From sequence record MZ475893.1: a stretch of 64,000 bases of DNA. One strand, 5' to 3'. The notes beneath the pieces are model-generated. The model worked only from the letters and a program-made list of their open reading frames with translations. It made no database searches and was not told the DNA's origin. A program made the translations under genes and the position numbers. Positions 33,041 through 40,624 of the stretch are shown piece by piece (within the stretch, counting starts at the first letter, position 1; every line of letters begins with the position of its first letter).

Positions 33041-33247
33041 ATGAAAGACATTGTGCTACACACAGCCCTTTTATTGACCATGATCGTTGTTAGCTTTTTG
33101 ACTCTTCACTACATTCGCTTCCTGAGTCTGGGCTACTATATGCTGATCACTATGACAGCATTCGTACTGGCCGTGTATGCGTGCAAGCGTCTCGCATCTG
33201 CTGTCACTAAAAATCGTTTTAACAAAGTGAGAATCAATCGTGGCTAA
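33041..33247 (+). CDS. small membrane protein
   Basis: 68 aa, two TM helices. Confidence 0.7.
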   Translation: MKDIVLHTALLLTMIVVSFLTLHYIRFLSLGYYMLITMTAFVLAVYACKRLASAVTKNRFNKVRINRG

Positions 33248-33785
33248 ATCTTTCGGTGTGTACCTGACGTTCATTCTGCGCCATCGCCCGCAAGACATTG
33301 GCATTGCAATGGACACCCAAGGCTGGGTATCAGTTCCAGACTTGCTCGAACGTGCTCAATACAAGAAGCAGCCAATCACGTTAGAGATGTTGCGTGAAGA
33401 AGTTGCTACTGATGGTAAAGGCCGCTTCCAGTTCAACGCTGCCCACTCGCGCATTCGTTGTGTGCAGGGACATTCAGTTGAGCATGTGATTCTTAACCTC
33501 AAGCCATACACGAATCACAATGACCCGCTGTATCACGGAACAGCCAGCAAGAACGTTGCGTCTATTCTTGCGCAGGGAATTCTTCGCGGTAAACGTAAAC
33601 ACGTTCACATCGCAACCAACACCGCTACTGCTAAGCAAGTTGGTCAGCGTCACGGTGAACCTGTTGTGTTTGAGATCGACACGTATGCCATGATCGTTGC
33701 TGGCTATAAGTTCGAACAAGCCGAGAACGGTGTGATTCTTACCGAGCACGTTCCATCCCGATATCTAAGGTTGGTAGAGTTATGA
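33240..33785 (+). CDS. kptA: RNA 2'-phosphotransferase Tpt1/KptA
   Basis: ILRH.P, GWV, RIRCVQGHS, LYHGT, RKHVH, RHG.P, NGV.LT..VP motifs. Confidence 0.92.
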   Translation: MAKSFGVYLTFILRHRPQDIGIAMDTQGWVSVPDLLERAQYKKQPITLEMLREEVATDGKGRFQFNAAHSRIRCVQGHSVEHVILNLKPYTNHNDPLYHGTASKNVASILAQGILRGKRKHVHIATNTATAKQVGQRHGEPVVFEIDTYAMIVAGYKFEQAENGVILTEHVPSRYLRLVEL

Positions 33786-34189
33786 CTGAACAACGAATGA
33801 GTTATTGCGGTTCACGTTACATCCGTACATCTTCTGGCAGGTGGTATTTGCTTTTCGAACGAGCTGCCTGCTTGTGCATCAATCGTCATGGTACCCAGTA
33901 CTGGCGAGCAGGTACGCAAGTGTGGAAGGATGTGTCTCTCTCAACTCGCGCCACTTTGGAGAACGAGTTTATCAGTCGTACCCGCAAAGATTTCAAGGAG
34001 TCGAAGTCTGCGTACAACAGATGGGGCAAGGTGATTCGTACACTCATTCTAGGTGCAGGCACTAACGAGCATCTCCACGATTTAGCGTCGATTCTTGAGT
34101 CGCTGAGACAGACGCATATAGGGCGCAAGCAACAGCAACTGCGCACTACATTGGATGAAATAGCTATTCAGTCGAGAACTACCCTGTGA
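33782..34189 (+). CDS. hypothetical protein
   Basis: 135 aa operonic ORF. Confidence 0.7.
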   Translation: MTEQRMSYCGSRYIRTSSGRWYLLFERAACLCINRHGTQYWRAGTQVWKDVSLSTRATLENEFISRTRKDFKESKSAYNRWGKVIRTLILGAGTNEHLHDLASILESLRQTHIGRKQQQLRTTLDEIAIQSRTTL

Positions 34190-34195
34190 TATAAT
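34143..34195 (+). promoter_or_regulatory. early promoter (19-bp box + TGn-TATAAT)
   Basis: GCACTACATTGGATGAAAT-N28-TATAAT. Confidence 0.75.
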
Positions 34196-34246
34196 AGTAG
34201 CGAACGCTAAACAGTCTCGTTTAGCTACTTACATGAGGATATGTAT

Positions 34247-34348
34247 ATGATTAACAACTACTGCCCGTTTCGCGCTGTGATGTACCACGCTTCAATCATC
34301 CTTCTCGCCATTTGCTCTGGCGTTGTTTTAGCCCACGCACATTTCTGA
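34247..34348 (+). CDS. small hydrophobic peptide (33 aa) leading the radical SAM operon
   Basis: GAGGA RBS; MINNYCPFRAVMYHASIILLAICSGVVLAHAHF; below the track cutoff. Confidence 0.5.
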   Translation: MINNYCPFRAVMYHASIILLAICSGVVLAHAHF

Positions 34349-34361
34349 GGAGAATATTAAG

Positions 34362-35501
34362 ATGATGCGCAACTTCACGGCAATCCTGCCAGTAACCTGT
34401 AATGCCGACTGTTCATTCTGCCCTGAGAAAGAAATGGAGCAGAAAGCTACGAACCGCCAGTGGTTGACTAACCTCATCTCGCAGATTAATGATCATGCTG
34501 GTGAGTTCGACCACGTTTCAATTTCTGGCGGTGAGCCTACGCTCAAGCCAAAGTTCCTGTTTGAAGTGATCGATGCGATTCGCACTCAAACGGATATCGA
34601 TAAAGTTGGACTCACGTCTAACGGTCGCTTCCTGAATAAGCAAGACAGCATTTTTCAGTTTCTTGATCTGAACACAGACGACATGCTGGAAAGCAAGCTG
34701 TCCCATCTGAATATCAGCCGTCATTCATTCGATGATGCCAAGAACAACGAGATCATGAAAGTGCGTTACACGTACACGCTCGATGATCTTGTGAAGTTTA
34801 GACGTCAACTCGGCACGAAGCTGAGCTTCCACATTAACTTCGTTATCAACGAGCACAACATCGATAACATTGAGTGGGAGTTTGCACAGGCTAATCGATT
34901 CATGATGGAGAATCCGTGGATCGATGTAGTGTTCCGCGTTGACTATGCAGACGAAAAGCTGAATCGTCGTCTGCGTCGTTACGGCCTGTCTGTGCAAGCG
35001 TGGCGTGATGCAACTCGCGGCTCTATTCGTGATGAACGCATAGCGCGTGAGAAGCTGAAAAAGAAACCCAAACTCGTTCAGTTGTTTGATGGAGTGTTTA
35101 GCGGTACAACACAGGACAATGACGGTACATTTACCGATGCGTGTCCAAGCTGTTTCGTACATCGCAGCCAGAAGATTCATAACAACCACGCGTGGCTAAA
35201 AGCGTCCTCGTACGAACCGAACGTAGACGAAGAGGAATACACTGAGTATGTGTTCCACATGGACGGCGAACTTTACTACGACTGGTCGCGTGCTGAGCCT
35301 GTGCCTGCCGTAGAGAAGAAGCCGCGCAAACACAAAGCCATTCGCATTATCCAGAGAGAAGTGGAAGAAGATGATATGGATGAAGACATGCCTGCATCTT
35401 CTCGTATGGGTTGTCAGTATAGAACTGTCGGATGTTCTTACGGTGAATCAGAATCTGCTGGTGGCTGTTCATTTAGATCTCCTGGCAGCTGTAGCTTTTA
35501 A
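34362..35501 (+). CDS. radical SAM enzyme with Cys-aromatic repeat tail
   Basis: CNADCSFC (CxxxCxxC), SISGGEPTL, LTSNG, LNISRH; tail GCQY/GCSY/GCSF/SCSF. Confidence 0.9.
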   Translation: MMRNFTAILPVTCNADCSFCPEKEMEQKATNRQWLTNLISQINDHAGEFDHVSISGGEPTLKPKFLFEVIDAIRTQTDIDKVGLTSNGRFLNKQDSIFQFLDLNTDDMLESKLSHLNISRHSFDDAKNNEIMKVRYTYTLDDLVKFRRQLGTKLSFHINFVINEHNIDNIEWEFAQANRFMMENPWIDVVFRVDYADEKLNRRLRRYGLSVQAWRDATRGSIRDERIAREKLKKKPKLVQLFDGVFSGTTQDNDGTFTDACPSCFVHRSQKIHNNHAWLKASSYEPNVDEEEYTEYVFHMDGELYYDWSRAEPVPAVEKKPRKHKAIRIIQREVEEDDMDEDMPASSRMGCQYRTVGCSYGESESAGGCSFRSPGSCSF

Positions 35502-35514
35502 TTAAGGAAAGATT

Positions 35515-35751
35515 ATGTCAGACCCAAAACCAAAACCAGAAGTAACAAAAGCTGATCTCCAACATCTGCTGCACGTAGCAGGTGCGTATGAAGGCAACGA
35601 CCGCCATCGCTGGTACGCAATGTTCATCGTGCTCAAACTGAAACGTCAGATGGACGGTCAGAACCTGCCGCGCTCTTGTGCCAACATTACGCATGAGAGC
35701 CAAGACTACGAGATCGAAGAGGCTTGCTACAAGCTGGGGTATTTATCATGA
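35515..35751 (+). CDS. hypothetical protein
   Basis: 78 aa, AAGGA RBS. Confidence 0.75.
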   Translation: MSDPKPKPEVTKADLQHLLHVAGAYEGNDRHRWYAMFIVLKLKRQMDGQNLPRSCANITHESQDYEIEEACYKLGYLS

Positions 35752-36766: not shown

Positions 36767-37030
36767 ATGGCAGTAGGTTTCGCCAAAGATGATGACGTGT
36801 CCAACACCGTCGAAACAAACGTGCTGAATGAAATCGACCGCGCTCGTTCTGAGTTGCGTGGCGCTGGTAGTTCGCACTGTATCAACCCTGACTGTGGTGC
36901 AGAGATTCCACTCATGCGCCGCGTAGCAATGCCGAACGCTCGCTACTGCGTTAGCTGTCAAGCACACCATGACGGTACGCCTGCTGTTGGCTACAATCGT
37001 CGTGGTTCCAAAGATTCTCAACTGAGGTAG
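36767..37030 (+). CDS. ybiI: DksA/TraR C4-zinc-finger protein, YbiI-like
   Basis: MA.G.A.DD.V...I.RAR...C....CGA.IP..RR.A.P..R.C..CQ...YNRRGSKDSQLR, closely matching the E. coli YbiI pattern. Confidence 0.9.
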   Translation: MAVGFAKDDDVSNTVETNVLNEIDRARSELRGAGSSHCINPDCGAEIPLMRRVAMPNARYCVSCQAHHDGTPAVGYNRRGSKDSQLR

Positions 37031-39643: not shown

Positions 39644-40624
39644 ATGCGTTTTGGTTTCGCCTGCAAACTGCTTGATGACAACGGTAAACAACCGTACACG
39701 AACAAGAGCCTGAGCTATGCTCACTTCTCCAAGCTGTCTCAGACAGAGCAGCAAGAAAAGCTGGTGCTCGTCGTCACACACAATCTGACCTCGTTGCTTG
39801 AGATGATCAGACACGTTGGCCGTCTGCGCACCGACTTGCGCATGTTTCGAATCACAAGCGAATTACTTCCGCTATTCACGCACCCGATGGTAACGCGCAT
39901 GTATCTCCAAACACACATGACCAAACTGACAGACACGATGTTGGCAACATGTGGTGCAGCGGCTAGACGTCTTGGTGTTCGACTGTCATTCCACCCTGGT
40001 CAGTTTACCGTGCTTGCGTCTGACCGACCCGACGTTATGCTCAACTCGATTAACGAAATGGAGTATCACGCCTACTGTGCGCAGGCTATGGGCTACGGTC
40101 GTAAGTTCCAAGATTTCAAAATCAACATTCATTTGAGTGGTCGTCGTGGTGCCACAGGTTTCAGAGACGCCTACTCTCGTCTAAGCGATCATTGTCGCAA
40201 GATGATCACGGTAGAGAATGACGAGTACACTTCCTCGATCGAGGATTGTCTTGAGCTTGCCGACATTTGTCCTGTTGTTCTCGACATTCACCATCACTGG
40301 GTAATGACTAACGAATACATTCAGCCGACCGATGATCGTGTTCAACGTGTCATTGACTCGTGGCGCGGCGTTCGTCCTGTTGCGCATTACTCTGTGTCAC
40401 GCCCAGAGTTCATACCGTCTACGGGTCTGCCTGATCAGAACAAGCTAGAAGCAAAGTCTGCCTCGCTGCGTGCTCATTCTGACTACTACCACAACGACAG
40501 CGTAAACGAGTGGGCCCTCAGCTTCGAGCAATTCGACCTGATGTGCGAGTCTAAAGCGAAGAATCTAGCACGCACGAAACTAGCCCTTTTTAAGGGCAAC
40601 TCTGCACAAATATGGTCAAAATAA
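39644..40624 (+). CDS. uvsE: UV-damage endonuclease UvsE (UVDE)
   Basis: GFAC, N...L, MFRI.S.L.P, RLSFHPGQF.VL.S, INIH, TVEND, VLDIHH, HYS, AHSD, MCESKAK. Confidence 0.93.
   Translation: MRFGFACKLLDDNGKQPYTNKSLSYAHFSKLSQTEQQEKLVLVVTHNLTSLLEMIRHVGRLRTDLRMFRITSELLPLFTHPMVTRMYLQTHMTKLTDTMLATCGAAARRLGVRLSFHPGQFTVLASDRPDVMLNSINEMEYHAYCAQAMGYGRKFQDFKINIHLSGRRGATGFRDAYSRLSDHCRKMITVENDEYTSSIEDCLELADICPVVLDIHHHWVMTNEYIQPTDDRVQRVIDSWRGVRPVAHYSVSRPEFIPSTGLPDQNKLEAKSASLRAHSDYYHNDSVNEWALSFEQFDLMCESKAKNLARTKLALFKGNSAQIWSK

Follow-up and report, generated by a model that had tools for sequence, protein, structure and literature searches.

In the present study, we analysed a 64,000-nucleotide stretch of sequence record MZ475893.1 (the whole stretch is referred to as the window), which was 100% identical to the Erwinia amylovora jumbo phage pEa_SNUABM_45 (264 kb), and we focused on a gene for a radical S-adenosylmethionine (SAM) enzyme whose product ends in a cysteine-rich tail. 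We propose, with a probability of roughly 0.4, that this gene is a self-contained enzyme-plus-peptide unit, in which the C-terminal module would be a substrate of its own enzyme, like the substrates in systems that make ribosomally synthesized, post-translationally modified peptides (RiPPs). Phage genomes often encode radical SAM enzymes, but few of these have known roles. The parts of the gene were as follows, with the basis of each given in brackets.

34362-35501, + strand: radical SAM enzyme gene, 379 amino acids (aa) plus stop (open reading frame (ORF), Pfam match, homologs and AlphaFold2 (AF2) model)
34398-34421, + strand: CxxxCxxC radical SAM cluster motif, aa 13-20 (C13, C17 and C20 invariant in 51 aligned homologs)
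35142-35153, + strand: invariant CxxC, aa 261-264, in the beta-hairpin turn of a Twitch-like C-terminal subdomain (alignments and model)
35292-35402, + strand: variable charged linker, aa 311-347, predicted to be disordered (AF2 predicted local distance difference test (pLDDT) and family comparison)
35403-35498, + strand: cysteine-doublet tail, aa 348-379, with two doublets and four C-x-[F/Y] units (sequence and homologs)

The protein matched the Pfam Radical_SAM family (PF04055) with 43 bits against a gathering cut-off of 29.5 bits. Together with the CxxxCxxC motif at aa 13-20, this bore out a preliminary description, made from the letters of the window alone, which had named the protein a radical SAM enzyme. 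The alignment of homologs further revealed an invariant SGGEP segment. Besides the triad of the SAM cluster, the only conserved cysteines of the body were C261 and C264, which formed a single CxxC within a hairpin (E257-261/E264-268 in the AF2 model). The seven-cysteine SPASM motif was absent, with only two cysteines between the triad and the tail, and the statement that the cysteine tail was not a SPASM element therefore held. An AF2 model of the enzyme, built with the 51 homologs, had a mean pLDDT of 85. Its body (aa 1-327) was confident, with 280 residues above 90, and the pLDDT was below 50 from about aa 328 onward. Foldseek matched the model to viperin, MoaA and SuiB with a probability of 1.00. 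As modelled, the body has a radical SAM fold of the MoaA/viperin-like type and a Twitch-like end.

In the acidic stretch (aa 335-342) as well as in the tail (aa 348-379), the protein agreed with the sequence quoted in the preliminary description. The four tail cysteines (351, 358, 369 and 377) were directly followed by Q, S, S and S, and two residues on by Y, Y, F and F, respectively; the protein ended in C-S-F. When the protein was shuffled, four or more C-x-[FYW] units within the last 32 residues were obtained once in 200,000 shuffles. Two relatives with about 97% identity differed from the protein by 18 aa, of which eight lay in the 37-aa linker and eight in the 310-aa body, and their tails were identical or altered only between the Cys-aromatic units. 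Across the family, the linker was charged and hypervariable, with a length of 8-136 aa (median 41). Its median K+R fraction was 0.18, compared with 0.11 for the body, and 61 of 175 linkers were net negative.

We then compared the tails of 64 close homologs, down to 34% identity. In all 61 that could be analysed, a variable charged linker was followed by 2-10 tail cysteines, mostly as C-x-[F/Y]. For the wider family, a profile search of 1.84 billion representatives yielded, at 50% identity, 138 clusters with E<=1e-30 and 491 with E<=1e-10, and nearly all of the matches kept the body CxxC and ended in Gly/Ser-rich cysteine doublets. At least two tail cysteines were present in 172 of 187 proteins of the wider family, in the following raw counts, which ignore phylogeny.

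Tail cysteines and number of proteins (n=187): none, 13; one, 2; two, 72; three, 19; four, 46; five, 15; six, 11; seven or more, 9

The gap between successive tail cysteines peaked at 5-9 residues with a mode of 7, and in 153 of 174 cases the distance of the last cysteine from the C-terminus was 0-2 residues. In the wider family, the residue preceding a tail cysteine was G in 39% and S in 27%, and the residue following it was G in 54%. The close family had G (46%) or S (19%) at +1 and F (32%) or Y (31%) at +2. The tail motif was kept down to about 25% identity of the body. Because Y or F occupied the +2 position in 24% of cases family-wide versus 63% in the enterobacterial jumbo-phage clade, C-x-aromatic is a clade-specific flavour and the cysteine doublet is the conserved unit; judged from these sequences, G-C-G is the general flavour of the family and C-x-aromatic only a local one. 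The Cys-aromatic repeat reported earlier thus stood for this protein, with its four C-x-[F/Y] units, but not as a general feature of the family, which is the doublet. The preliminary description had also named absence or poor conservation of the tail in homologs as grounds for giving up its idea, and the tail was kept in 61/61 close homologs and 172/187 proteins of the wider family. A literature search found no paper describing this family. One sub-branch (L095, L099, L112, L115 and L118; P0148, P0149, P0166, P0182 and P0190) carried Cys-free extensions in place of the Cys tail, several of them Lys/Glu-rich, and no Cys-doublet gene was found within about 1.2 kb at these loci.

The module also occurred as a gene of its own. 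In a tail-less clade, the enzyme stopped about 8 residues beyond the last body motif of the alignment and retained the CxxC. At the following loci from IMG/VR and metagenomes, at least 11 in number, the tail-less enzyme was adjoined by a small Cys-doublet gene.

Split loci: L015, L021, L043, L044, L086, L087, L088, L091, L096, L139, L151

The small gene lay on the same strand and encoded 60-94 aa, comprising a helix, a basic linker and terminal Cys doublets. It usually started within a few bases of the enzyme stop with its own Shine-Dalgarno sequence, and at some loci it stood one gene away or just upstream of the enzyme. A set of 67 distinct metagenome loci, read to the enzyme stop codon, contained 34 fused tails, 12 loci flagged as split, 8 atypical Cys tails and 13 loci with no Cys module in reach. 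Nine of the 12 flagged loci were credible, and two of these nine repeated IMG/VR loci, leaving seven new ones. About nine tenths of the family members had the fused form. Since the linker and Cys-doublet module occurs either fused or as a separate adjoining gene, it behaves as an autonomous partner module. On this comparison of genes, the module is autonomous and tied to the enzyme family, yet not universal. A gene-encoded peptide that travels with the enzyme, fused or adjacent, was thus present, as is required of a RiPP system, and the split architecture would look like the pattern expected of a cognate, RiPP-like peptide.

According to our proposal, the C-terminal module would be the cognate peptide of the enzyme, and its terminal cysteine doublets would enter the active site next to the putative metal site at the CxxC. 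Covalent modification of the tail by the 5'-deoxyadenosyl radical would follow, at or next to a cysteine, for example as a thioether-type cross-link. This modification would take place in cis or between subunits in the fused form and in trans where the peptide has a separate gene. The C-x-[F/Y] units of the phage clade might serve as four repeated recognition units: each cysteine of the clade has the same local context (+1 G/S, +2 F/Y) and would therefore behave like such a unit. The substrate reading is favoured by the conservation of the tail in 61/61 close homologs and 172/187 proteins of the wider family, the split genes, the uniform flanks of the units, their copy number of 2-10, and the borosin and CrpC-CrpA precedents. 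It is also helped by the second tier of structural neighbours of the models, which are the peptide maturases SuiB, EpeE and SkfB, and by an apparent dearth of other conserved neighbour genes at the loci inspected. Tentatively, this may be the first radical SAM enzyme to include a RiPP-like core peptide of its own. It would be autocatalytic, as borosins are, would have split relatives, and would belong to a large phage-only family that makes a Cys-modified peptide or a protein-borne cofactor during infection.

Several observations weigh against the substrate reading. No RiPP recognition element (RRE), protease or exporter was found; the only Pfam matches were of the radical SAM type, and the neighbours were unrelated small ORFs. 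Fusion is the rule, unlike in RiPPs, and the core is conserved and the linker variable, the reverse of most RiPPs. Single-Cys tails were nearly absent (2/187) and even counts dominated, which argues for pairwise use of the cysteines, as in metal binding or a disulfide, over independent substrate units. At the 13 metagenome loci without a peptide gene in reach, some of the enzymes carried Cys-free charged extensions. MoaA and viperin, which come closest in full-length fold, act on nucleotides. AF2 left the tail undocked, with a pLDDT below 50 in the window protein and of 66 falling to 53 in a short-tail homolog. Tail docking by AF2 was set aside as uninformative evidence, the tail being disordered or of low pLDDT in both proteins tried.

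The most serious alternative, also a tentative one, is that the tail is part of the catalytic machinery, a swinging arm rather than a substrate, and that the true substrate is a small molecule or a nucleic acid, most likely a nucleotide. Such an arm could act in three ways: an auxiliary Fe-S or metal site at the body CxxC could obtain its missing ligands from the doublet, the doublet could carry reducing equivalents into the active site, as the C-terminal Cys pair of ribonucleotide reductase does, or the tail could plug and gate the active site like that of MoaA. The doublet as minimum unit fits this alternative well, since one cysteine was found in 2 proteins, two in 72 and four in 46, with even counts dominant, and so do the spacing mode of 7 and the position of the last cysteine, 0-2 residues from the C-terminus in 153/174. 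It also draws on the exactly one invariant body CxxC in a hairpin turn of the Twitch-like subdomain, on the best full-length fold match to MoaA (TMq 0.64), followed by viperin, and on the precedent of the MoaA tail, which enters the active site and works as a separate 11-mer (PMC9026282, PMC12625886). Fusion as the rule, the persistence of the tail motif to about 25% body identity, as for catalytic elements, and the frequent vicinity of nucleotide or RNA-repair genes point the same way. However, hypervariable linkers of up to 136 aa are needless for a ligand or a plug, the 2-10 units are repeated with the same flanks each, the tail-less enzymes still keep the CxxC, and AF2 does not dock the tail. 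To our knowledge, there is also no precedent for a separate, largely unfolded peptide of 60-94 aa that donates cluster ligands or reductant to a radical SAM enzyme. The arm and substrate readings are not fully exclusive, because a substrate cysteine could bind the open cluster site before modification.

It is improbable that the tail is a docking or metal-binding appendage apart from catalysis, which could, for instance, bind a host or phage partner protein, capture an Fe-S cluster or metal, or use the charged linker to anchor the enzyme on a polyanion. The tail is disordered and charged, the linkers are rich in K+R (median 0.18 versus 0.11 in the body), the site is at the extreme C-terminus, as is often the case for short linear motifs, and the enzyme gene lies among small early-type phage genes. 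An appendage would nevertheless leave the constant pairing of the module with one enzyme family, fused or adjacent, unexplained, as well as the invariant CxxC. Polyanion binding would not be general, because 61 of the 175 linkers were net negative.

Another candidate peptide lay upstream of the enzyme. The preliminary description had given the operon its own early promoter and the enzyme a possible 33-aa peptide partner, encoded by an ORF said to have been missed by the track, and the region contained the following features.

34186-34197, + strand: putative promoter, made up of an extended -10 element (TGnTATAAT, 34187-34195) and a weak -35 (read from the sequence)
34198-34246, + strand: conserved 5' leader, which contains a Shine-Dalgarno sequence and two small hairpins (comparison with phage AD1)
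34247-34348, + strand: small hydrophobic ORF, 33 aa (sequence; GenBank pEaSNUABM45_00277)

As for the promoter, the promoter-like extended -10 element was unique in the window and kept in the Dickeya phage AD1, the Erwinia phage Y3 and the metagenomic relative L006. A generic two-hexamer promoter scan did not call it. The leader was likewise unique in the window, with 35/35 nucleotides identical to AD1 up to and including the ATG, and it was nearly unchanged in Y3 and L006 as well. The element and leader together (34186-34250) were preserved near base-for-base in Erwinia and Dickeya phages, in which the adjoining proteins were only about 60% identical. A riboswitch or structured RNA was rejected for the leader, which had no Rfam match and a fold no better than that of shuffles (z -0.92). 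A terminator-like hairpin with a T-run, a candidate attenuator, lay inside the small ORF and upstream of the enzyme (34306-34322, + strand); with one such signal found versus 2.9 expected in shuffles, it was within chance expectation.

It is very improbable that the 33-aa ORF encodes the precursor peptide of the enzyme. The ORF adjoins the enzyme gene, shares its strand and transcription unit, contains two cysteines, and is conserved as an ORF in L006, with which it shares 19 of 33 residues and whose enzyme is 83% identical. However, it is hydrophobic and has the look of a membrane helix. It was kept in the sibling phages pEa_SNUABM_25 and _14, both of which lack the enzyme gene, and was nearly identical in SNUABM_25. 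No such ORF preceded the enzyme in SNUABM_5, L007 or any of the distant members examined, and the ATG of the ORF is the start of the long enzyme form, with an N-terminal domain of about 95 aa, in AD1 and Y3. Because the ORF is kept without the enzyme, is absent from most of the family and shares its ATG with the long enzyme form, it is not a dedicated peptide of the enzyme, and the proposed partnership had to be given up. Nor had the annotation overlooked the ORF, which is already in GenBank as pEaSNUABM45_00277; an alternative start at 34241 would extend it to 35 aa. The idea that the ORF is a remnant of the N-terminal domain of AD1 and Y3 was also rejected, since the similarity ended one base after the shared ATG and tblastn found none inside the ORF. 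The least credible alternative, that the tail pattern is a chance low-complexity ending without function, can appeal to the predicted disorder and poor complexity of the tail, but it is refuted by conservation: the pattern was reproduced in just 1/200,000 shuffles, its conservation extends to hundreds of divergent proteins as well as to the separate genes, and it keeps its cysteines and aromatics while the linker changes in relatives of about 97% identity.

Every genomic context examined was a phage contig, usually with the enzyme gene among small genes of uncharacterized role. To cover cellular genomes, one genome per species from 185,579 bacterial and archaeal species was scanned. Patterns of the close clade found no homologs in these genomes, and broad patterns found six true matches, all of them on short contigs of metagenome-assembled genomes and all with fused doublet tails. 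In the sample examined, the family is confined to phages. Beyond close relatives, no conserved partner gene was found across the family in the contexts inspected. Nucleotide or RNA-repair genes were often near, namely Tpt1 here and an Rnl1-type ligase, dCMP deaminase or thymidine kinase elsewhere.

33240-33785, + strand: Tpt1/KptA RNA 2'-phosphotransferase, upstream neighbour (Pfam PF01885, 1.6e-44; PHROG 5470)

The Tpt1/KptA gene was labelled only "hypothetical protein" in the phage record. The order of Tpt1, a 135-aa ORF and the enzyme was common to AD1, Y3 and L006. Judged from gene order, Tpt1 is syntenic context and, as regards function, a candidate neighbour only.

The sibling phages pEa_SNUABM_25 and _14 had flanks of about 98% identity without the radical SAM gene. 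In SNUABM_25 (L048, 1548-1897), the small ORF was directly followed by a 78-aa gene, which is the gene 3' of the enzyme in the window (35515-35751). The enzyme gene is accessory, because it is absent from these two siblings, and its accessory status suggests that the enzyme acts in host interaction rather than core replication. Some half of the close homologs carried an extra N-terminal domain of about 95 aa without a Pfam match (AD1, L003 2716-3009; Y3, L004 2725-3000), which the window protein lacked. An extra acidic ORF of 71-81 aa was located between the small ORF and the enzyme in SNUABM_7 (L047, 96-341) and in L006 (4346-4561). As read from these arrangements, gains and losses of genes concentrate between the leader and the enzyme. 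Further downstream in the window, a DksA/TraR C4 zinc-finger protein (36767-37030, + strand; Pfam 2.2e-10) and a UvdE UV-damage endonuclease (39644-40624, + strand; 1.5e-46) were identified, both of which the record calls hypothetical.

The family comprises at least 138 clusters at 50% identity, and its signature is one body CxxC with a tethered or separate cysteine-doublet peptide. If the tail is a substrate, radical SAM chemistry would have a new architecture of the self-modifying kind, and phages would make a modified peptide. An arm, by comparison, would be a new way to complete or feed a radical SAM active site, extending the idea of tail gating from MoaA. On either reading, the natural fused, split and tail-less variants form a ready comparative series.

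Finally, we compared the enzyme with known families. By sequence profile and Foldseek, the nearest solved structures were viperins and MoaA, followed by the peptide maturases SuiB, EpeE and SkfB. None of the curated family cut-offs was approached except that of the superfamily Radical_SAM. Membership in the viperin, MoaA and HxsC families was rejected, as the curated cut-offs were all missed and only the core aligned. Sequence similarity to MoaA ended at about residue 175, and the C-terminal subdomain was Twitch-like by structure only. The model of a short homolog gave TM scores of 0.60-0.64 to MoaA and SkfB; the CxxC hairpin was present in the window model.

In structure, no full-length match was better than MoaA (TMq 0.51 with the window protein, 0.64 with the short homolog), and MoaA was also the best PDB sequence-profile match for the broad alignment (4e-16). 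Both MoaA and the phage family have a CxxC in the C-terminal subdomain and a disordered C-terminal tail ending in small residues. Previous studies have reported that SAM cleavage is triggered by the MoaA tail, which enters the active site, and that an 11-mer peptide added separately rescues activity (PMC9026282, PMC12625886). The auxiliary cluster site of MoaA has three cysteines and its tail ends in GG (PMC9026282), whereas the phage enzyme has two conserved cysteines (C261 and C264). The MoaA tail is 11 aa long with GG, and the phage tail is 45-174 aa long with repeated Cys doublets. The window enzyme scored 44-45 bits against MoaA cut-offs of 231-325, the best of 51 members reached an E of 2.6e-17 over the core only, and no molybdenum-cofactor genes were near the phage enzyme. 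The Y3 homolog (Y3_274, L004 2725-4068), which GenBank calls "GTP 3',8-cyclase MoaA", looks over-annotated, as the family scored far below the MoaA cut-offs.

Viperins, including pVip, share the radical SAM core with the phage enzyme (PDB profile 6e-11, Foldseek 7e-10, PADLOC pVip 50 bits), but only the first ~170 residues aligned and the C-terminal half was unlike. The NCBIfam viperin model gave 51.4 bits against a cut-off of 180 over profile positions 11-169 of 281, and PADLOC pVip covered positions 9-152 of 257. Viperins lack the Cys tail, and the present family is phage-encoded, not host-encoded. Class I and II ribonucleotide reductases have a disordered C-terminal tail with two cysteines a few residues apart near the C-terminus. 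The likeness lies in a C-terminal Cys pair on a radical enzyme, which in the reductases acts on nucleotides. The reductases differ in that there is no homology, they have one pair that is never split off, and the reductive chemistry is theirs and could be transferred here by analogy only. A glycyl-radical idea, raised by R-C-G-Y-like units in many homologs, was discarded, since no Gly follows a Cys in the window tail and the activase models scored far below their cut-offs (NrdG2, 32 bits versus 131; PflA, 28 bits versus 232).

Among peptide maturases, SCIFF/ranthipeptide, CrpC-CrpA and HxsC-type systems resemble the phage family in that a radical SAM enzyme goes with a short, conserved partner, which is Cys-rich or built of tripeptide repeats. 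HxsC was the top NCBIfam match with 53.5 bits against a cut-off of 267.9, and no HxsA-type repeat peptide, HxsB or HxsD neighbour was found at the loci inspected. The thioether maturases of these systems have a SPASM domain with two auxiliary clusters and usually an RRE, whereas the phage enzyme has neither. Thioether installation by a radical SAM enzyme on a Cys-rich protein has been documented for CrpC-CrpA (PMC13692751). Borosins, which occur in fused and split enzyme-core forms, are like the phage family in having the peptide at the enzyme's own C-terminus, split relatives with adjacent genes, and multi-unit repeats (bioRxiv 10.1101/2021.12.24.474128). They differ in that the borosin enzyme is an N-methyltransferase and its modification is proven, whereas the present enzyme is a radical SAM protein with a putative modification, its fused form dominates, and its hosts are phages.

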